Made by a program: the position numbers and the translations under genes. This document shows positions 3,754 through 57,713 of a stretch of 64,000 nucleotides of DNA, piece by piece. Under the pieces are notes generated by a model. The model made no database searches and was not told the DNA's origin. It worked only from the letters and a program-made list of their open reading frames with translations. Location of the stretch: the sequence record NC_023568.1; one strand, given 5' to 3'. Numbering within the stretch: position 1 is the stretch's first letter; each line of letters opens with the position of its first letter.

Positions 3754-4096
3754 TTTGATAACACAATTATTTTCTAAGAAGCACTGGAAAGTCATAGGTC
3801 GTTCTGAAAACATAGATCTGTGGACAGTAACAGATCGCAAACCACAAGTGAAGTGTCGCTTGCTATTAAAAGAAGACCAATTCGGTAATCGAGATTACGA
3901 GCTAGACATGCTCGACGATACAAAATCAAATTACAACTCTCATACTCGATACTTGATGATTGACCAAATCATCCCGCGTGAGTATGTTCAAAAGTTCTTG
4001 AAAGGTTGGTCTGTAGACAAAATCAATCGCATTTACGGTAAAACTGTCTTTACTATAGAGAAAACACCATACGAGTCTTTCAAAGACTGGCGTTAA
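3746..4096 (+). CDS. hypothetical protein, possible paralogue of 6953-7381
   Basis: shared WKV...KCR pattern. Confidence 0.65.
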   Translation: MINLITQLFSKKHWKVIGRSENIDLWTVTDRKPQVKCRLLLKEDQFGNRDYELDMLDDTKSNYNSHTRYLMIDQIIPREYVQKFLKGWSVDKINRIYGKTVFTIEKTPYESFKDWR

Positions 4097-4097
4097 T

Positions 4098-4123
4098 AAA
4101 AGCCCCTTAATCGGGGCTTTTTT
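4098..4123 (+). terminator. rho-independent terminator (GCCCC-TTAAT family)
   Basis: AGCCCC ttaatc GGGGCT + T run; near-identical at 14413, 25486, 45488. Confidence 0.85.
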
Positions 4124-4216
4124 AGGTCTGAAGAAAATATTTGAAAAAGTTCTTGACGAGTGTTTAGAATTTACCTATTATGTGTATATCGAAACGAAAC
4201 ACAGAAAGAGAAAATT

Positions 4217-4546
4217 ATGACAAAAATTACTATGACAAGCGATATTCACTTCGGTCACGCTTCTGTATCATCAAATGATTTAGTGACTAAGCTGTTCAAA
4301 GAAGTACTGCGTAGTAACAACGTTGGTTATGGCAAGCTTTACCGCGAGAAACGCACGTCAACGCATCGTAGCAACATTTCTGGTAAGAGCGTACGATTTG
4401 TCGGGATACGTCTTTCTGTCCCTGAGAAGACGATACAGAAGGTTCTACGCGAGTTTAACGACATGCTTCCAAATGACTATGTTGTCGAGTACAACAAACC
4501 GTGGTGTCGTTATGCACATGCATCATTTCAAATTTTTAAGAAGTAG
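4217..4546 (+). CDS. hypothetical early protein
   Basis: TTGACG promoter, ATCGAAACGA leader and GAGA RBS place the start at 4217. Confidence 0.7.
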   Translation: MTKITMTSDIHFGHASVSSNDLVTKLFKEVLRSNNVGYGKLYREKRTSTHRSNISGKSVRFVGIRLSVPEKTIQKVLREFNDMLPNDYVVEYNKPWCRYAHASFQIFKK

Positions 4547-4549
4547 ATT

Positions 4550-4897
4550 ATGATTAAAAAAGACGTTAGTCGCCTCACTGTAGGCGACATCACAGAAGAT
4601 ACATTCTGGAATAGCACTGAATGTCTTAAAGAAGGCAAGTACTTACTGACTGGCGTTCAGAAAAACGGCGAAAAGCTACCTGAGTACGAGCACGATGAAC
4701 TAGAACACATTGTCGCAGTCGTCGAACAGTCGATTTTAGATCGAAGCAGTGGCTCTTACATGCGACAGTTCAATCGTCACATTGTACTTGAGTCGTCTGA
4801 AAACGTGTTGCACGTTCGTCTTGGTTACGGTTCAAAAGATAATCGTTCACCTGGTAATTATCTTCACGAGATAAAAATAGAGGTTAAAAATGACTAA
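4550..4897 (+). CDS. hypothetical protein
   Basis: ORF track, operon packing. Confidence 0.7.
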   Translation: MIKKDVSRLTVGDITEDTFWNSTECLKEGKYLLTGVQKNGEKLPEYEHDELEHIVAVVEQSILDRSSGSYMRQFNRHIVLESSENVLHVRLGYGSKDNRSPGNYLHEIKIEVKND

Positions 4898-5357
4898 AGG
4901 TTGGTCTGATTACGAGCTTGAAGGTCGCTCAAAACAAGAACCTAAACGACACAAAATGCAAGACACCGTTGATGAAATGTGTCGTGTTATGCGAGAGACA
5001 CCTGATAAATTCGAAACAACCACATATCGAGTTGATTTTGACAATGGTGTTTGCTTATGGCGCAGTGACTTTCGTGATATTTGGAACGGGAACACAACAG
5101 AGCGCGTATTCACAACTGAGCAATCTCGTCAATTACGTGCTGCATATACAGAAGCAATGGAATTCAAGAAGTCTCGAACGCAAGAAACTATTGCTAAAAA
5201 GTTCAAGCCGAAAAAGAAAGCGACGAAAATTCAACATGTCGAGCAATCTAAAACAGATTCACTTCGTTCTCAAACAGAGCGTGATCGCGGTATTGGTGTA
5301 GTAGTCCTAGGTGAGACTCAGAAAAAAGAAAAGAAATGGTGGGAGTTTTGGAAATGA
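4890..5357 (+). CDS. hypothetical protein
   Basis: GAGG RBS; ends KKWWEFWK. Confidence 0.7.
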   Translation: MTKGWSDYELEGRSKQEPKRHKMQDTVDEMCRVMRETPDKFETTTYRVDFDNGVCLWRSDFRDIWNGNTTERVFTTEQSRQLRAAYTEAMEFKKSRTQETIAKKFKPKKKATKIQHVEQSKTDSLRSQTERDRGIGVVVLGETQKKEKKWWEFWK

Positions 5358-5818
5358 AATCACAAGAAGAATTTGCACGTCAAGCAATGCGCGTAAGAGC
5401 AGCAGTTAGATTGTTTGATCCAGTCATTAGCTTCCAAGAAGCATTAAACGATGATTTGTCTCATCGTGGTCAGCGTGTCATGTCTGCTTTACCAGACAAC
5501 ATTCAGTACATGTGGCAGAAACGCGACGAAATGAACGAAAAGATTTTAGCTGAAATTAGTTGTATCGAAAAGCGCATTGACAAAACTCTATGCGAAATCA
5601 ACGACCCGTTACATGCAATCGGCAAAGACGTAGTGAAGAAATCAGGCAAACCGTTTAAAGGCGGTCAAGATATTGTTCGCGTGACTGGTATTACAAAGCA
5701 CCCGTATACTGAAGGTTATGCGTTCACGTACAATTACTCAGAAGACAACGGTCAGCTTGCACAGTCGTACATTCACACATCGATGGTAATTATCAACTAT
5801 TCTAGCTTGAAATTATGA
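5354..5818 (+). CDS. hypothetical protein
   Basis: ATGA coupling; KKSGKPFK motif. Confidence 0.7.
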   Translation: MKSQEEFARQAMRVRAAVRLFDPVISFQEALNDDLSHRGQRVMSALPDNIQYMWQKRDEMNEKILAEISCIEKRIDKTLCEINDPLHAIGKDVVKKSGKPFKGGQDIVRVTGITKHPYTEGYAFTYNYSEDNGQLAQSYIHTSMVIINYSSLKL

Positions 5819-42174: not shown

Positions 42175-43611
42175 TTAAAAGCTGTAGCGTTCGACGCCTA
42201 CAGTTTTCATCATGATCTTGATTGGCTCAAGCTCACCACCCAACAGTGAAGTCAAGATAGATGGGCTACAACCAGATACCAGTGCAGTACCCGCTTCACC
42301 AGCTTTAACCGGAACGTTGCCAAGACGACCACGAATGTTCCAGAAGACCAGTTGTGGCATTTCATAACCAGCACGTGCGTACATGGCTTTGATTGCATCG
42401 AAGTTCGCAGGTTCACCGCGACCGTACCAGCCACCGCCAGTGTTTGCTTGATCGAATTCCATGTCACTCATGATAAGCAACTTGGTTGGCATATCTTCTT
42501 GTGAAAGATTTGCACGCTTCGCACGCTCTAGCAGAACATCAAAGCACTTACCGATGTTCGTACTCATGTCTTCGCCTGAACGATTCATGTTATCAAGACG
42601 CTCTTTCAATGAGCTACCGCGCAACTGGTGGAAGTGCGGGTCGCTTGAGAACGAAATGAATTGATCTTTGAAGATGCCTTCATTGCGTTCAGCAACATAA
42701 ATCCCAAGAGACATTGCAACTTGCTTACAAGTCACACCTGAATGGTCTGTACCTGCGTTGATTGGCGTGCTCATAGAGCCAGACACGTCAACAACAGGGA
42801 TGATGCGCTCATCAGAACCTTCCATGTAGTTTGGCAGAGCTTTCCATTGCTCGTTCGCTACAGACGCATTACCGTGACTAACGCTCTTAACGACATCGTA
42901 TGGGAACAATGCGCCAGCGTTGATCTTCGCTTCACCTTTTTGAAGTGACTCGATGTAGCTTGTGTAACGAGCTGAAGCGTTACGACCGAATGCTTGTTGA
43001 TAACGAGCAGACGCTACAGAAGGCAATTTACCGAAGTCGATTGCATCCCATTCCTGAGCACACATTTTCTGTTCAACAGTGTCAGACAGAAGAGAAAGAA
43101 TCTTACGCCACTGCTTCGCAGTTACACCAAGAGACTTGATTGTGCGCTTGAATACGTGACCGTTTTTGCTGTTCTCGCGTGGGAACCACTTCGCAGCAAG
43201 ACCGTTCTTGTCGTTTACAATCGCGTTTGACCACATAGTGATCGCGTCTTTTTCTAGACTTGTGCCGAAAGCAGAAATCAAGTCATCGAAACGACCTAGT
43301 TCTGGAATTTTCGACATTACAGCACGAGCTACGTCAGGCTGCTCATTACAAAGTTTAGCGAAAATAGTACGGAAAGTACCACGTTCACCCGCACCACCGC
43401 GAACGTCACGAGACCATAGCAAGATGCGTGTCGCAAGTTCTGGGTTTTCTGCAAACGCACGACCGAACAGTGTTTTAGACTGATCGTTGCCACGCATAGC
43501 AGCAATACCGAAGAACAAGTTTAGACACTCGTTACCTGAAGTGCTGTGAGTAACTGCACCGTTTACTGTGCGTGAATCGTTTGTTTGCATTGCGTTCATA
43601 AATACTGACAT
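42175..43611 (-). CDS. Ro60-like TROVE/vWA protein (DUF2828 type)
   Basis: RDVRGGAGER, AAKWFPRE helical region; MIDAS VVDVSGSM, MSDMEFD, LVFWN. Confidence 0.8.
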   Translation of the reverse strand: MSVFMNAMQTNDSRTVNGAVTHSTSGNECLNLFFGIAAMRGNDQSKTLFGRAFAENPELATRILLWSRDVRGGAGERGTFRTIFAKLCNEQPDVARAVMSKIPELGRFDDLISAFGTSLEKDAITMWSNAIVNDKNGLAAKWFPRENSKNGHVFKRTIKSLGVTAKQWRKILSLLSDTVEQKMCAQEWDAIDFGKLPSVASARYQQAFGRNASARYTSYIESLQKGEAKINAGALFPYDVVKSVSHGNASVANEQWKALPNYMEGSDERIIPVVDVSGSMSTPINAGTDHSGVTCKQVAMSLGIYVAERNEGIFKDQFISFSSDPHFHQLRGSSLKERLDNMNRSGEDMSTNIGKCFDVLLERAKRANLSQEDMPTKLLIMSDMEFDQANTGGGWYGRGEPANFDAIKAMYARAGYEMPQLVFWNIRGRLGNVPVKAGEAGTALVSGCSPSILTSLLGGELEPIKIMMKTVGVERYSF

Positions 43612-43690
43612 TGTTCATTTCCTCATAATTAATTGCTGTAAAATGTCTTTGATGAAGTGATTATACGCGAATTTTAATGCGTGTAAACAC
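43607..43690 (-). promoter_or_regulatory. early promoter plus leader carrying the AG-N8-CAGCA module that pairs with the start codon
   Basis: GTTTAC-17-TATAAT; GACATT (43642-43647) complementary to AATGTC (43607-43612). Confidence 0.75.
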
Positions 43691-46712: not shown

Positions 46713-48428
46713 ATGAGTTCTATTAATTTACCTGGCGGAGGACAACCTCTACCAAAATACGTCGAAGAAGCGCCTGTAAATGGGTTACTATACGGTCGTA
46801 AAGATGAAGCATGGGAGCCAATCCCTGAAGATTCACTAACACCGTTTCCATTAGGAACGACACCTAATTCATTCGATGCAGAGACTGGCGACAGAGCCGC
46901 AGCAATCGCTCTAAGAGACGCTTATGCATCAGCAAACCCGTCATGGGTTGCGTTTTATGTAAACAACCCGACATCTGCGATTGACCTTGTATATGAAGAC
47001 ATTTCTGTTGGCGGGACAGTTGCTGAAAGACAAACGTATACAGGAACACAATGGATTTCACAGCGTATTGTTGAAGGGATACCCGGGCCAATCGGGCCAT
47101 CAGGTGAAGGGTCAATCCCTCCATTCGCGTCGATTGCTGAACGCGATTCTTTCTTCGCGTCATCAGGGAATAAATCACTATTGAAAAAAGGATTACCTGT
47201 ATTCGTTCAGGAATTTGAAGGTCGAGCAAGCTCATATTATTGGAGAGGCGAGACAAACCCAAATACGTACGATGCTTCTAAGTTCTCACTAGCCGCAGTT
47301 CAATCAGGGAACGGTGATTTATACTTAGCAAATGCGCATAAGATATCTTCGTCAGGTCAGAATATAGCAATAACCAATATTATCGACAACGTGAGCTTTC
47401 ACCCCGTATGGCAGACATACGAAGAAGGGAATACTGCAACGGTACGTGTGCGTTCCATCGAGTCTGTTACTGAATATTCTGACAAATCAGGGCAACTAAC
47501 CAACCCACGATGGGAACTCGCGCAGATGGCAAACAATCGCACGCTATACTCAGTCATGGTTGATTTTGTCAATGCATACGATGAAATTGATGTTGTCGTT
47601 TATAAAAACACAGATGAATATTACCAAACTAAAATATTCGATATTACACCGGGCGAAGTTGATGTATTAATCGAACCACCGTTTGACATTCGTTCAATGG
47701 ACGTGCTTGAGCTTGAGTTGCGCAACCCGAACTTAGATGTTGTAGTATGGGGTAACTTATCAACAGGAATCCCATGGAATAAACCAACAACACGTGATTT
47801 TACCGATGAGACTGTTGTGATTCAACCTGATTTATATGCAGTCGAAACAAGAGTAAGTGACATCGAAGCAAACGCGATTGTCACTGGGGATAATGTTTCT
47901 GAACTGACAAATGACGCGGGATATATTAGCGACAAAGACATCATTTTCCAGAAGAGCAATAATACTGGAACTAACGTGTTAACGCTAAACGGGACAGGTG
48001 AGGAGGGTACTATCCCACTATCGCAAACCGATGAAAATGGTGTGTTATTCGAATACTCGTCAACTACTGATAATTTCAGACCACTTGAAGATAAACCAAT
48101 GCACATTAAACTTAGAATAAGTATTGATCGTTCTGGCGGAGGGTCAAACCCCGAGATCATAACGTGGGTTGAATCAGCAGCGACGGACACAACAGTTCCT
48201 AATGCATTTACACAAGAAACATCAGCATTTCGAATGGTTGATCTGCAAACAGACCGTACATTATTTTTAATCGATACGATTTTAAATATGGACTCAAGTC
48301 GTTATTATCGCATAAGACTTCGTAATTTAAACGGCGACGATTTTGATGTTGATACATTCGGTCCGTTTACAACAAGTTCGGGTAATGATATTTTTGCACC
48401 CGCAGTTGAGTTTATGCTTAGTCGATAA
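46713..48428 (+). CDS. probable trimeric virion appendage protein with N-terminal foldon-like motif
   Basis: KYVEEAPVNGLLYGRKDEAW; GIPGPIGPSG triplets; VSELTNDAGY motif. Confidence 0.6.
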   Translation: MSSINLPGGGQPLPKYVEEAPVNGLLYGRKDEAWEPIPEDSLTPFPLGTTPNSFDAETGDRAAAIALRDAYASANPSWVAFYVNNPTSAIDLVYEDISVGGTVAERQTYTGTQWISQRIVEGIPGPIGPSGEGSIPPFASIAERDSFFASSGNKSLLKKGLPVFVQEFEGRASSYYWRGETNPNTYDASKFSLAAVQSGNGDLYLANAHKISSSGQNIAITNIIDNVSFHPVWQTYEEGNTATVRVRSIESVTEYSDKSGQLTNPRWELAQMANNRTLYSVMVDFVNAYDEIDVVVYKNTDEYYQTKIFDITPGEVDVLIEPPFDIRSMDVLELELRNPNLDVVVWGNLSTGIPWNKPTTRDFTDETVVIQPDLYAVETRVSDIEANAIVTGDNVSELTNDAGYISDKDIIFQKSNNTGTNVLTLNGTGEEGTIPLSQTDENGVLFEYSSTTDNFRPLEDKPMHIKLRISIDRSGGGSNPEIITWVESAATDTTVPNAFTQETSAFRMVDLQTDRTLFLIDTILNMDSSRYYRIRLRNLNGDDFDVDTFGPFTTSSGNDIFAPAVEFMLSR

Positions 48429-50504: not shown

Positions 50505-50733
50505 AGACAATACCGAAGTGTTTTTTTCGTCTTTTGCATAAATCGGAGTTGACTAGCTTATTGATTCTCAACAAGCAAATATCGTCTGTTTCAGCGACGC
50601 GCCTATCTGACTATTTCTAGACAGAGAGAATCTTTCCTTTCAAGCTGCGCCTAAGCAAGCTCAGGTTAAAATCAGCCCAGGTTAAGATCATCACTTCTTT
50701 TAAGTAATTTCAATTGTTTGCTGTATATTGTCT
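50505..50733 (-). ncRNA. 229-nt structured RNA closed by the AG-N8-CAGCA module (Y-RNA-like, long type)
   Basis: AGACAATA/TATTGTCT terminal helix; AAAGACGA...AAAACACTTC 3' motif. Confidence 0.75.
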
Positions 50734-50796
50734 CTCTCACCATGCTCGTGATATGCCGAAGCAAAGTATCATTCGTCGCATGATAAGAGCTTAATA

Positions 50797-51028: not shown

Positions 51029-51238
51029 TTACAACTGTGTGATTGAAATATATTCCCAACCGTATAAACCTTCAAGTTCTTCAATCGGCTCACTAACAAT
51101 GTCAGAAATATATTCAGCAACTTTTGCTTCAACTTCTTCATTAGATAATTCTTCACTAACGGAAAAAACATCTTCGTTATTGTTGCCACCGAAATCCCCA
51201 CCAATGTCATATTCACACCATACAGAAATATAGTTCAT
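51029..51238 (-). CDS. small acidic hypothetical protein
   Basis: GAG RBS before ATG 51238. Confidence 0.65.
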   Translation of the reverse strand: MNYISVWCEYDIGGDFGGNNNEDVFSVSEELSNEEVEAKVAEYISDIVSEPIEELEGLYGWEYISITQL

Positions 51239-51262
51239 GTTATTCTCGCAGTTGTTTGAAAA

Positions 51263-51338
51263 TGGTGCCCTGACACGGATTCGAACCGCGAACCTGCTCA
51301 TTACAAGTGAGCTGCACTGCCAGTTGTGCTATCAGGGC
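51263..51338 (-). tRNA. tRNA-Thr(TGT)
   Basis: loop CTTGTAA, CCA. Confidence 0.93.
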
Positions 51339-51344
51339 GTTACT

Positions 51345-51457
51345 GAGTGTTATTACTAGCGTCGTCCAGACCAGTGATACCAACACTGAAAGGGAATCGA
51401 ACCCTAAACATTTCTTTCCGATAAGAATATTAGTAAATTGTTTGCTGAAAACACTCT
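51345..51457 (-). ncRNA. YrlA-like circularly permuted tRNA mimic with the module
   Basis: GAGTGTT/AACACTC end helix; order T arm (TTCGATT), capped acceptor-like stem, GG-containing D-like loop. Confidence 0.75.
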
Positions 51458-51465
51458 TCGGTATT

Positions 51466-51539
51466 TGGCTGGGGATAACAGATTCGAACTGATACCAACG
51501 CATTCAAAGTACGTTATGCTGCCTTTACACCAATCCCCA
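51466..51539 (-). tRNA. tRNA-Gln(TTG)
   Basis: U1-A72, loop CTTTGAA, CCA. Confidence 0.93.
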
Positions 51540-51558
51540 ATTGTTCTTAAATTATCTT

Positions 51559-51634
51559 TGGCGGAACCGACGGGTTTCGAACCCGCTACCTTCTCCGTGA
51601 CAGGGAGACATGCAACCACTTACACCTCGGCTCC
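51559..51634 (-). tRNA. tRNA-Asp(GTC)
   Basis: loop CTGTCAC, G73, CCA. Confidence 0.93.
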
Positions 51635-51792: not shown

Positions 51793-51850
51793 AGTAATCC
51801 TTTTTGCTTTTTCCAAATAAAAGTTTTGTATTGTTTGCTGTAAGATTACT
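51793..51850 (-). ncRNA. 58-nt end-closed RNA with the module
   Basis: AGTAATC/GATTACT helix then TTA-CAGCAAA. Confidence 0.7.
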
Positions 51851-52255: not shown

Positions 52256-52265
52256 ATTATTCAAC

Positions 52266-52352
52266 AGCTTGCGTTCTTTGGTCTGTTTATCGCTGTCTGA
52301 ACTGAGTTCGTCGAGCGATCAATAGAGTAAGTTAAATTGCAGTATGCAAGCT
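52266..52352 (-). ncRNA. 87-nt end-closed RNA with the module
   Basis: AGCTTGC/GCAAGCT helix then ATA-CTGCAAT; internal ATCGCT/AGCGAT stem. Confidence 0.72.
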
Positions 52353-52357
52353 AAAAC

Positions 52358-54221: not shown

Positions 54222-54337
54222 TGGTAGTCGGGGCTGGATTCGAACCAGCGACCACGTGCTTAACAGGCAATTGAAGGAGTGCTGGAGCGATACTTGTCAG
54301 TATCATTCTTCGTGCTCTACCACTGAGCTACCCGACT
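54222..54337 (-). ncRNA. tRNA body (Asn-like loop retained) with the module inserted in the anticodon arm
   Basis: AGTCGGG/CCCGACT, D and T arms, ACCA; insert GATACT-GACA-AGTATC-GCTC-CAGCA. Confidence 0.8.
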
Positions 54338-55893: not shown

Positions 55894-56017
55894 TGGTGGA
55901 GAGTACGGGATTTGAACCACGTGACAAAAAGATTTACCTAGTTATTAAGGTTGCAGCATGAATGCTTGTCAGTATTCTTTAACATTCTTTTGCTCTACCA
56001 GACTGAGCTAACTCTCC
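55894..56017 (-). ncRNA. tRNA body with the module replacing the anticodon loop
   Basis: GGAGAGT/ACTCTCC, ACCA; GAATACT-GACA-AGCATTC-ATG-CTGCAA. Confidence 0.8.
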
Positions 56018-56024
56018 AGAATTT

Positions 56025-56140
56025 GAAGGTGAAGTGCAGGACTCGAACCTGCGACCTCCGGCGTGCATGTGAATGCAGAATGAAATCTTATCAGACTTCG
56101 TTTTTTGGCCGGCGTTCTAACCTACTGAACTAACTTCACC
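56025..56140 (-). ncRNA. Asp-like tRNA body with the module replacing the anticodon loop
   Basis: GGTGAAGT/ACTTCACC, CCGGC/GCCGG stem; GAAGTCT-GATA-AGATTTC-ATT-CTGCA; no CCA. Confidence 0.78.
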
Positions 56141-56150
56141 AATGTAAAAA

Positions 56151-56287
56151 CATATTGAGCAGGGTGCAGGATTCGAACCTGCGTCACGATCTTGGAAATG
56201 ATATGCTAAATTGATTGCAGAATACAAACTTAACAGCTTGCGTTTATGCTACGTGTGCTAGCCACTACACCAACCCTGCTCAATATG
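56151..56287 (-). ncRNA. Gly-like tRNA body with the module, inside a 15-bp terminal stem
   Basis: GCAAGCT-GTTA-AGTTTGT-ATT-CTGCAA; residual TTTCCAA; T arm GCAGG-TTCGAAT-CCTGC. Confidence 0.78.
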
Positions 56288-56519: not shown

Positions 56520-56528
56520 TTTGTTAGT

Positions 56529-56675
56529 GAGAGTACATTGGTCGAGTGTAACGGAATCGAACCGTTCCCACGATCTCCCTATGATATGCGTAAATTGGTT
56601 GCTGAATATAATCATGTCTGATTACAGTATGCTACGTGTGCTGCCACTACACCAACACTCGACCAATGTACTCTC
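56529..56675 (-). ncRNA. tRNA body with the module, inside a 21-bp terminal stem
   Basis: CGAGTGT/ACACTCG + ACCA; TGTAATCA-GACA-TGATTAT-ATT-CAGCAA; paralogue of 56151-56287. Confidence 0.8.
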
Positions 56676-57010: not shown

Positions 57011-57265
57011 TTATACTGAAAGAATGATACCGCTTTCTGTCTCACCTCGTTCAAGCGCAGCGTGCTTGATTTGAAGCTGAGATACAGCTTGTTGAAGCTC
57101 AGTGATAGCTTTATCGTAAAGTTTGTTGTTCTCTTTAAGTAAAGCAATCTGATCGGTCTGCATACCGATGATATACGTCAATAATACAACGTTCTCTTCA
57201 GTAGTTAGAGTTTCGGGAGCTTCATTGTACTTCTTTAATACTGCTTCAGTAGATAAATCAGTCAT
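57011..57265 (-). CDS. coiled-coil hypothetical protein
   Basis: ORF track; start probably MTDLS. Confidence 0.65.
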   Translation of the reverse strand: MTDLSTEAVLKKYNEAPETLTTEENVVLLTYIIGMQTDQIALLKENNKLYDKAITELQQAVSQLQIKHAALERGETESGIILSV

Positions 57266-57713
57266 TACTATCAACCCAATTTAAATCAAGTGGTTCAAGA
57301 TATTCATCAACAAGCCGAACTTCAGCGTTGACGGGCATAGGTGTGATCGCGTCGTCATAAGACAACGTAACGTGAGGGGTATAGTCAGGGTAGTCGTGAG
57401 TACCACCGATAGAGATAAGATCATCGTGACGTTCTACAAGTTCTGGACATACCATCTTAGCAACAACTGCATATTTGCCGTCTTGCGTTTTCCAACAGTC
57501 GATATGTTCAACAGTAGCAACGAAAGTGGTATCGACAACAGGTACATCAATTTGCTTACGACTATAAAGCACAGTCACGTGAAATTTATCTGGTTCTAAC
57601 GGATTTTTTAGACGAAGCGTTTTCTGCAATCGAACTAACTCTTGCTTACTCGCCTCGTCTAATCTGATACCAACGTAAGTTCCCTGACTTTCAAGGAACT
57701 TAGATAGTTTCAT
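57258..57713 (-). CDS. acb1: anti-CBASS 2H phosphodiesterase (T4 gp57B)
   Basis: two HxT motifs (FHVTVLYSR, THDYPDYTPHVTLSY), EYLEPLDLNW; synteny 57B-57A-1-3. Confidence 0.9.
   Translation of the reverse strand: MKLSKFLESQGTYVGIRLDEASKQELVRLQKTLRLKNPLEPDKFHVTVLYSRKQIDVPVVDTTFVATVEHIDCWKTQDGKYAVVAKMVCPELVERHDDLISIGGTHDYPDYTPHVTLSYDDAITPMPVNAEVRLVDEYLEPLDLNWVDSND

Follow-up and report, generated by a model that had tools for sequence, protein, structure and literature searches.

Ro60-Y RNA particles have been well studied in animals and in a few bacteria. The subject here is a possible phage counterpart, an RNA element encoded on the minus strand (51345-51456) of a 64,000-nucleotide stretch of sequence record NC_023568.1, the whole of which is referred to below as the window. 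The bacterial YrlA RNAs, with which the element shares its architecture, consist of a V region, a T arm, a closed acceptor stem, UA and a D arm, in this order and within a terminal helix (Chen 2014; Wang 2018). Further hallmarks of YrlA are a GNCGAA(N)G motif, a V region starting with YUAY, conserved D and T stems, a Levitt pair and a location at most 4 kb from a TROVE gene (Chen 2014; Wang 2018), and it has been warned that tRNA dimers mimic these RNAs (Chen 2014). According to a survey, ROT/TROVE proteins occur in some jumbo phages. In the Felixounavirus Bas63 the Ro60-like protein gp130, encoded directly upstream of tRNA genes, counters the defence system Ppl (PhageMaP preprint, 10.1101/2024.10.10.617714), and the authors guess that some of the ‘tRNA genes’ at that place are Y RNAs, no such RNA being identified (10.1101/2024.10.10.617714).

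A sequence-only reading of the window had proposed that the element is a YrlA-like, circularly permuted tRNA mimic and that it supports a Ro/Y interpretation of the locus. The comparisons reported below indicate that it is a real, conserved noncoding RNA of ~112-127 nt, which has the YrlA architecture but appears from its sequence to represent a distinct, unannotated family and not a member of the Rfam family YrlA (RF02553). It is quite probably a two-module RNA, in which a partner module for a Ro60-like protein of the DUF2828 type is joined to a permuted tRNA-like domain.

A conserved noncoding RNA in the tRNA cluster

The region is 100% identical to the Vibrio phages VH7D and Va3, which are KVP40-like jumbo phages of the T4 type. 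The element is surrounded by a minus-strand tRNA cluster, comprising 27 genes according to ARAGORN and 29 tRNA matches according to Rfam, and occupies a 127-nt spacer (51339-51465) within it. On the transcript, tRNA-Gln(UUG) (51466-51539, minus strand) lies directly 5' and tRNA-Thr(UGU) (51263-51338, minus strand) directly 3' of the element, both being called by ARAGORN/Rfam. Neither ARAGORN nor Rfam, even at E<=10, makes a tRNA call within the spacer itself, and the element lacks the combination of features that defines a tRNA (RF00005), namely a cloverleaf whose 7-bp acceptor stem is open, a 7-nt loop on the anticodon arm and at least 29 bits. No annotation of the element was found in the ~30 phage records carrying the sequence. 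A coding interpretation of two open reading frames (ORFs) at this place (51240-51503, minus strand; 51307-51492, plus strand) was rejected, as both cross two tRNA genes and contain 1- and 2-nt indels among close relatives.

Structure prediction, alignment and covariance model (CM) scores together define a 112-nt element (51345-51456), whose ends are joined by a 7-bp closing helix between GAGUGUU (51450-51456) and AACACUC (51345-51351), as recovered by RNAalifold and in the alignment. This helix bounds the interval of the sequence-only reading, 51345-51457, which therefore corresponds to the helix-bounded element. The single-stranded signature UUUUCAGCAAAC (51440-51451) follows directly after the closing helix and is, given its enrichment beside DUF2828 genes, proposed as the module that binds the Ro60-like protein. 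Next on the minus strand are a V-type hairpin, UUCUU-AUCGGA-AAGAA (51412-51427), upstream of the T arm; the T arm itself, UAGGG-UUCGAUU-CCCUU (51390-51406), with the canonical T loop UUCGAUU and a G-C closing pair; a closed acceptor-like hairpin, CAGUG-UUGGUAU-CACUG (51372-51388); and a miniature D-like hairpin, GUC-UGGAC-GAC (51361-51371). The hairpins AGGG-TTCGATT-CCCT (51391-51405), CAGTG-TTGGTAT-CACTG and GTC-TGGAC-GAC, on which the sequence-only reading was built, are all present as it wrote them, and the strand that it placed after the GG hairpin is AACACUC, which closes the RNA. The resulting order (V hairpin, T arm, closed hairpin, D-type hairpin, closing helix) agrees with the published descriptions of YrlA (Chen 2014; Wang 2018).

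The loop of the closed hairpin (51376-51382) has a GGU(A/G) core in all lineages (UUGGUAU, GUGGUAAG, AUAGGUAGU, GGUAAC, GCAGGUGU), and the RNA therefore has two GG-bearing loops, either of which is a candidate for contact with the T loop. With 5 bp and the 7-nt loop UUGGUAU, this hairpin could be taken for an anticodon arm with the ‘anticodon’ GGU, a possibility that was dropped, as XZ1 has a C at the position of U33 and other lineages have loops of 6-9 nt.

In order to assess conservation, the spacer was compared to that of KVP40, V09, PVA8, QD01, nt-1, VS1, XZ1, D491s and D484. In ten aligned phages of the KVP40/nt-1/D491s type it is 125-129 nt long, flanked by the same two tRNAs and 86% identical by column, and all six helices of the element are recovered identically by RNAalifold. 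The fourth pair of the T stem covaries (A-U, G-U, C-G, U-A, G-C), while in the closed hairpin three pairs covary by double changes within the KVP40-like phages alone and all five do so across the family. The V-hairpin stem is invariant in the KVP40-like phages, its loop varying both in sequence and in length (6-8 nt), and its pairs covary across lineages. The GG of the D-like hairpin is likewise invariant, with different flanking loop letters (UGGAC, UCGGAU, CGGAC, UUGGA, GUGGC). A closing helix of 6-7 bp is found in every lineage, for instance GACCGUU/AACGGUC in Felix O1, AGGAUAG/CUAUCCU in RSP15 and AGAAUCA/UGAUUCU in the contig locus L092, and five of its seven pairs show double changes across lineages. 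In an alignment of 14 sequences from four lineages (A4), which was fitted to the model, 97.4% of the cells are paired and 17 of 26 pairs show double changes; this level of pairing is reached by none of 500 shuffles, and sliding the partner register reduces it to ~50%. The minus strand is regarded as the RNA strand because relatives have G-U pairs (T stem of KVP40; outer stem of nt-1, VS1 and D491s; GG hairpin of nt-1) that the plus strand would turn into A-C mismatches, and because the sequence of the T loop and the direction in which all the tRNAs are encoded point the same way.

The same RNA in unrelated phages

Weak blastn matches of the spacer pointed to Felix O1-like phages and to the Ralstonia phage RSP15, and the same layout is found within their tRNA clusters. 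The Felix O1 copy reads GACCGUU-UACAGCAAAAC...-UUUCU CGGUA AGAAA-...-GAGGG UUCGAUU CCUUC-ACUCG GCAGGUGU CGAGU-UG-GUGU AAUGGUA GCAC-...-AACGGUC and that of RSP15 AGGAUAG-UUUCAGCAAAC...-T arm-hairpin-GG hairpin-...-CUAUCCU. A CM built from the KVP40-like alignment only (R1) matches both over the full length of the model, RSP15 with 52.6 bits and Felix O1 with 37.7 bits (E 1.5e-8 and 1.8e-5, E-values being roughly calibrated). Members outside the seed of a broader CM (R2) include Moogle (47.3 bits), the loci L083 (40.4 bits), L102 (40.0 bits) and L095 (38.6 bits) and a second copy in RSP15 (34.6 bits). The scores of the window element itself, 150.7 bits with R1 and 138.4 bits with R2, are circular, both models being seeded with KVP40-like sequences. 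The Felix O1 version is conserved in ~250 Ounavirinae records, in which it either has no annotation or goes under the wrong label of a hypothetical protein or an odd tRNA, and was located at 399-536 in L020 and at 6456-6593 in L022. Some relatives have a more canonical D arm following UG or UA, with a D stem of 3-4 bp and a GG loop: Felix O1 (UG-GUGU-AAUGGUA-GCAC), L095 (UA-GCC-AAGCGGUUAA-GGC) and L102. When IMG/VR was scanned for a T arm followed by the hairpin loop GTNGGTATC, only VH7D, KVP40 and chance tRNA contexts were returned, and this loop is regarded as lineage-specific.

A tRNA origin of the element is likely, which bears on its ancestry and not on its present function. That it is a decaying tRNA or tRNA-dimer remnant without a function of its own, in which the T arm of a dead tRNA runs into the 5' portion of the tRNA after it, is a very unlikely explanation. 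It would fit the position in a cluster of 27-29 tRNAs, which in KVP40 holds annotated pseudo-tRNAs, as well as the tRNA-like spacing of the 5' half (a 7-nt strand, UU, a degenerate D region, a 5-bp stem, a 5-nt variable region and the T arm), the drift of the V loop between 6 and 8 nt and the mimicry of YrlA by tRNA dimers (Chen 2014). However, the best conserved parts of the element are the non-tRNA ones. In every helix, the closed hairpin and the closing helix among them, pairing is preserved by double changes, and the layout is met again in three phage groups unrelated to one another and, in contigs, next to DUF2828 genes.

A predicted Ro60-like protein on the same strand

The proposed partner of the RNA is encoded at 42175-43611 (minus strand), by a gene whose 478-aa product has the Pfam domains DUF2828 and DUF7788 and a Ro60-like predicted fold. 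The 18 large ORFs of the window that were scanned include none with a Pfam TROVE domain. When an AlphaFold2 model of the product (pLDDT 74, pTM 0.69) was searched with Foldseek, the top five matches were all full-length Ro60/Rsr/TROVE structures (2nvo, 9kop, 9l5y, 1yvr; E ~1e-6, TM 0.5-0.59), representing Rsr of D. radiodurans, Ro60 of the Thermus phage phiLo (two entries) and Xenopus Ro60, and the matches beyond these covered the vWA domain alone. The model, which is of medium confidence, suggests that this gene, on the strand of the element, specifies a structural homologue of Ro60 over its full length. The DUF2828/DUF7788 proteins would form a divergent Ro60-like family that combines a HEAT-repeat ring with a vWA domain. 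Against PDB chains, the protein sequence retrieved designed armadillo-repeat proteins only.

Homologues of the DUF2828 protein are present in at least 711 phage records, in some of which they are annotated as ‘Ro-like RNA binding protein’, and among more than 7000 metagenomic proteins. The carriers include Felix O1-like phages, RSP15, phages of Aeromonas, Campylobacter, Listeria and Staphylococcus, and mycobacteriophages. A literature search for ‘DUF2828’ yielded plant papers only, and we know of no RNA partner for this branch.

By way of its Felix O1-like relatives, gp130 of Bas63 can presumably be placed in the DUF2828 family. Its gene lies upstream of tRNAs, as does the DUF2828 gene of the Felix O1-like locus L022; for gp130 an anti-Ppl function is reported. 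The Felix O1-type RNA is a concrete candidate for the Y RNA guessed in Bas63.

Linkage of the RNA and its motif to DUF2828 genes

The surroundings of DUF2828 homologues were analysed in 80 IMG/VR loci, a set biased towards marine relatives with 48-55% identity and including near-duplicates. The motif T[AT]C[ACT]GCAA was counted 140 times on the gene strand within the 500 nt that follow these genes, compared to ~5 times per bin elsewhere and nine times on the opposite strand. Within -400 to +600 nt of the DUF2828 gene it is present on the gene strand in 78 of the 80 loci, usually directly after a short stem. The window element shows the same combination of a 6-9-bp helix and a single-stranded U(U/A)C(A/C/U)GCAA, in the form of GAGUGUU followed by UUCAGCAAAC, and is encoded on the same strand as the DUF2828+DUF7788 gene of its genome. 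As judged from these sequences, UU(U/A)C(A/C/U)GCAA would be a hallmark of RNAs encoded beside DUF2828/DUF7788 proteins.

The complete tRNA-like RNA is also found near such genes. In the Felix O1-like phage GEC_vB_B1 (L022) the tRNA cluster comes directly after the DUF2828 gene (4001-5416), with the RNA 1 kb downstream on the same strand. In RSP15 the gene lies within the tRNA cluster, one RNA being situated 4.5 kb upstream and the second, non-seed copy 0.9 kb downstream, both on its strand. The RNA ends 12 nt before the DUF2828 ATG in L092/L093 and lies 1.2-1.4 kb upstream of the gene in L083, L095 and L102, the non-seed members with R2 scores of 38-40 bits. Seven loci of the L081 type contain a variant with a long terminal stem 100 nt downstream of the gene. 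In most marine loci the motif is displayed again on a second hairpin, and units composed of a stem and ACAGCAA flank the DUF2828 genes of the Listeria phage LP-125, the Campylobacter phage CP81 and the mycobacteriophage Rose5.

Further copies of the module occur in the window, all on the minus strand. The signature UUUUACAGCAAUU was detected by motif scan in the leader of the Ro60-like gene (43625-43648), 29 nt before the ATG (KVP40 relative position -28) and downstream of a promoter-like site, TTTACA-N17-TATAAT; it may serve autoregulation. A second, minimal unit between tRNA-Trp and tRNA-Asn (51793-51850; 23.6 bits) has a 9-bp stem enclosing UUACAGCAAACAAUAC and is devoid of a tRNA-like domain. 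It aligns with units situated just downstream of marine DUF2828 genes, down to UUACAGCAAACAAUAC itself, and its stem covaries. A stem search gave a candidate third unit between tRNA-Tyr and tRNA-Met (52265-52353), with an 8-bp stem, UAGCUUGC/GCAAGCUG, followed by AUACUGCAAUUU; it is tentative because a stem of at least 7 bp arises at 16% of random positions in the same search.

Could the CAGCAA block instead be a signal at the DNA level, such as a promoter, a terminator or another protein site, with the hairpins being incidental? The occurrence of the motif in the gene leader next to a sigma-70-like promoter and its several copies in the tRNA cluster would agree with this. The strong strand bias (140 versus 9), the helix with covarying strands that nearly always precedes the motif and the lack of enrichment of promoter or terminator consensus sequences around the element (4 promoter-like sites versus 2.5 expected, and 0 terminators) make it highly improbable. 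With the same lack of promoter enrichment, a promoter function of the CAGCAAACAAT repeat was rejected.

The linkage to DUF2828 genes also bears on the idea that the element is a structured cis spacer for tRNA maturation, which serves the docking or timing of RNase P, RNase E or modification enzymes and has no protein partner of its own. Its fixed place between tRNA-Gln and tRNA-Thr in all relatives, the occurrence of tRNA-like members in phages with tRNA arrays and the small stable RNAs rnaC and rnaD, of unknown function, which T4 keeps in its tRNA cluster, lend this idea some credit. It is nevertheless unlikely, though less so for the tRNA-like part, as the 5' module is found beside DUF2828 genes in loci with no tRNA within 10 kb, the full tRNA-like RNA of L092/L093 directly precedes a DUF2828 ORF, and T4 rnaC and rnaD differ in layout and give no R2 match.

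Additional motif occurrences were noted in the window, on the minus strand. At 50625-50741 a further UACAGCAAACAAU motif is located 5 nt after AGAGAGA, with a possible partner, UCUCUCU, ~100 nt downstream, and this may be another unit of the family. Two paralogous elements (56523-56622 and 56150-56238) contain UUC(A/U)GCAA and AAUUUA(C/G)GCAUAUCAU, followed by a T arm and an acceptor-like 3' strand, the first ending in ...ACACUCG-ACCA; their layout is unlike that of the element and nearer to T4 rnaC, and their R2 scores are weak (28.6 and 15.8 bits). In LP-125 (L110, 971-1522) a match to the ROOL RNA (87.4 bits, threshold 99.1) lies between tRNAs ~1 kb upstream of the DUF2828 gene, and an RtcB-like RNA ligase is encoded 1.3 kb downstream of the latter, giving this neighbourhood a flavour of RNA repair.

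A proposed Ro60-like particle

Considering its conserved and covarying structure, which recurs in unrelated phages, together with the predicted Ro60-like fold and the tight linkage of motif and gene, the element is most likely the RNA partner of the phage's own Ro60-like protein (42175-43611). It would be transcribed with the phage tRNA cluster and freed by the enzymes that process tRNA-Gln and tRNA-Thr, its 5' end being set by the 3' processing of tRNA-Gln and its 3' end by the RNase P cut at the 5' end of tRNA-Thr. The first module, i.e. the 7-bp closing helix and the single-stranded UU(U/A)C(A/C/U)GCAA, would most likely be the binding site of the protein. The second, circularly permuted tRNA-like module (V hairpin, T arm, closed hairpin and GG-loop hairpin) may act as an optional effector, in which the T loop and the GG loop could form an elbow of the tRNA type. 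By analogy with Ro60-Y RNA particles, the RNA may gate or target the ring protein, while its tRNA-like domain may present a tRNA-shaped surface to a tRNA-recognising factor. The downstream function may, again by analogy, be RNA surveillance or anti-defence, the latter being considered because the Ro60-like gp130 of Bas63 is reported to counter Ppl.

Several observations weigh against this interpretation. The gene of the Ro60-like protein is situated 7.7 kb downstream of the element, though on the same strand, its link to Ro60 is drawn from a fold comparison with a medium-confidence model, and hhalign with the TROVE protein of Bxz1 aligned the MIDAS region of the vWA domain alone. Scoring against the YrlA model RF02553, the check suggested by the sequence-only reading, gave no match at E<=10 in a 401-nt search (51200-51600), and R2 in turn left the YrlA of Bxz1 undetected. 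The minimum free energy of the 112 nt, -23.5 kcal/mol, is no better than that of shuffled sequences (z -0.72 and -0.99), and over 51345-51456 it is the plus strand that folds better than shuffled (z -3.27, compared to -0.99 in the sense direction), an advantage owed in part to the CAGCAAAC region, which is able to pair on the antisense strand. The D-like hairpin of the window copy consists of 3 bp and a 5-nt loop (UGGAC), abuts the closed hairpin and has neither an 8-9 (UA) linker nor a Levitt-pair position, and tertiary tRNA-like folding of this copy is therefore uncertain; taken by itself the hairpin contributes a thermodynamically negligible -0.3 kcal/mol. The fitting of A4 and the rough calibration of the E-values, given above, also belong here. 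Finally, in most marine DUF2828 loci the motif follows a covarying stem of 6-7 bp and no tRNA-like domain is present, and in L082 (11418-11556) and L084 (11411-11549) the T arm and the closed hairpin have been cleanly lost in comparison to L081, L086 and L087. As they retain the long terminal stem, the motif and the last hairpin, L082 and L084 are natural deletion variants of the tRNA-like module, which, being absent or lost in such loci, is therefore not essential to the pairing of protein and RNA.

A wider interpretation, which is possible but rather doubtful, is that the DUF2828 branch has a large and hitherto undescribed class of Y-RNA-like partners, composed of a stem and UYCNGCAA, which hundreds of phages infecting Proteobacteria, Firmicutes, Actinobacteria and Campylobacter would carry. 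CAGCAA would then be the recognition code of the ring protein, replacing GNCGAA, and interchangeable effector modules would programme the particle, the one in KVP40-like phages, Felix O1-like phages and RSP15 being the permuted tRNA mimic. Such a particle might act on host factors that recognise tRNAs, for example in tRNA surveillance or repair during infection, or in neutralising a defence such as Ppl. No description of the RNA family or of the CAGCAA signature was found in the literature, and the family is missing from Rfam.

The element and its relatives supply a candidate partner RNA and a candidate recognition motif that can be mutated, as well as a laboratory model, namely E. coli K-12 infected by a Felix O1-like phage, e.g. 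Bas63, whose Ro60-like protein already has a phenotype. They also illustrate that phage ‘tRNA clusters’ hide structured RNAs other than tRNAs, which pipelines skip or mislabel as hypothetical proteins or pseudo-tRNAs.

Other features of the window

Three Rfam tRNA matches on the minus strand (54225-54337, 55897-56017 and 56028-56139) are 112-121 nt long, score 50-56 bits and are not called by ARAGORN. By order and length they apparently correspond to ‘tRNA-Pseudo-3/4/5’ of KVP40, and they resemble tRNAs that have taken up a large insertion. A 571-aa ORF with no Pfam match, which borders the tRNA cluster on the opposite strand (46713-48428, plus), looks like an insertion in VH7D-type phages, the equivalent interval of KVP40 measuring only ~320 nt. 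The product of 57258-57713 (minus strand) is clearly homologous to the anti-CBASS phosphodiesterase Acb1 (PF23474, E 8e-46) and is encoded beside genes for a dNMP kinase and a gp19-like tail tube protein.

Comparison with YrlA and other known RNAs

The T4 RNAs rnaC and rnaD (species 1 and 2 RNAs) are, like the element, small RNAs of a tRNA cluster in a T4-type phage; they are stable and freed by tRNA-processing enzymes, and rnaC has a T arm. In rnaC, however, the T arm is at the 3' end beside an acceptor-like strand, and both the closed acceptor hairpin and the CAGCAA module are lacking; neither R1 nor R2 gave a match in the rnaC/rnaD locus. With Deinococcus Yrn1 and the metazoan Y RNAs the element shares a plan in which a stem module binds the Ro60 ring and a second module recruits or mimics something else, and Yrn1, too, has a loop resembling a T arm. 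These RNAs differ in showing no similarity by sequence or CM, in their bulged binding helix of the GGUCCGA type and in the order of the tRNA-like parts.

The most extensive likeness is to YrlA. The reading of the element as a bona fide YrlA (RF02553), which binds a canonical TROVE Ro60, e.g. the Rsr of the host, via GNCGAA(N)G, is still very improbable. It is favoured by the T-acceptor-D order within an end-to-end helix, by ACCGAAG, which differs from GNCGAA(N0-1)G by one mismatch and lies directly 5' of the closing helix in seven of the ten aligned KVP40-like sequences, and by the YUAY-like start of the V region (UUAC/UUUC). Yet close relatives have ACCAUUG, ACCAUAG or ACUAAG in place of ACCGAAG, which is not kept in nt-1, XZ1, D491s, Felix O1, RSP15 or L092. 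Of the tRNA-type core of YrlA (UA 8-9 linker, 4-bp D stem, A..GG..A loop, Levitt pair) only the GG is retained in the window, the conserved D and T stems (GCUC/GAGC, GCGGG/CCCGC) are missing, and the Ro60-like gene is of the DUF2828+DUF7788 type, not Pfam TROVE, and at 7.7 kb lies beyond the 4 kb typical of YrlA. The Felix O1 and RSP15 loci, like the window, gave no RF02553 match at E<=10, whereas a phage control, the RNA upstream of the TROVE+vWA_Ro60 protein gp220 of Bxz1, scores 32.5 bits (E 1.9e-4; Rfam 15), which is below the gathering score of 69 bits.

Bxz1 and Rose5 served as positive controls in place of Salmonella YrlA. The S. Typhimurium YrlA domain, taken from the methods of Wang 2018, returned nothing from E. 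coli genomes, and a pattern derived from its core (T loop ... UAGCUCAAUGGUAGAGC; T arm...D arm) had 0 matches in 185,579 species genomes, a surprising result if Salmonella enterica with rsr-yrlA is among these genomes.

The element and YrlA are thus both modular, with a terminal helix, a V region, a T arm, a closed acceptor-like hairpin, a D-type hairpin and the helix again. A canonical T loop and a GG loop are common to the two, each shares its coding strand with the gene for a Ro60-type protein with ring and vWA domain, and the Y-U-(A/U)-C with which the V region of the element starts recalls the YUAY of YrlA. They differ in the protein-side signature, UYCNGCAA in the element and GNCGAA(N)G in YrlA, and in the terminal helix, which in the element has only 7 bp, as well as in the location of the element inside a tRNA cluster. 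The Ro/Y interpretation of the sequence-only reading survives in part: it gains from the Ro60 structural homologue predicted on the same strand, from the 5' module shared with RNAs adjoining that gene family and from a weak YrlA match in Rose5, and loses in that the element is outside the Rfam family, only approximates the GNCGAA(N)G site and has as its proposed partner the product of a distant gene of another Pfam type. The middle unit of Rose5, GGACUC-UAGCAGCAAUUAAC-...-GCGGG UUCGAUU CCCGU-GCCACC CUA GGUGGU-GUA-GUUC AAUGGCA GAAC-...-GAGUCC, combines the 5' module of the element with a match to the whole RF02553 model (36.4 bits, E 1e-4, likewise below the gathering score), and is a bridge between classical YrlA and the window element. 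By analogy with these RNAs, the element presumably works like a Y RNA of the YrlA type, in which binding to the Ro60-like protein is joined to a tRNA-like domain.

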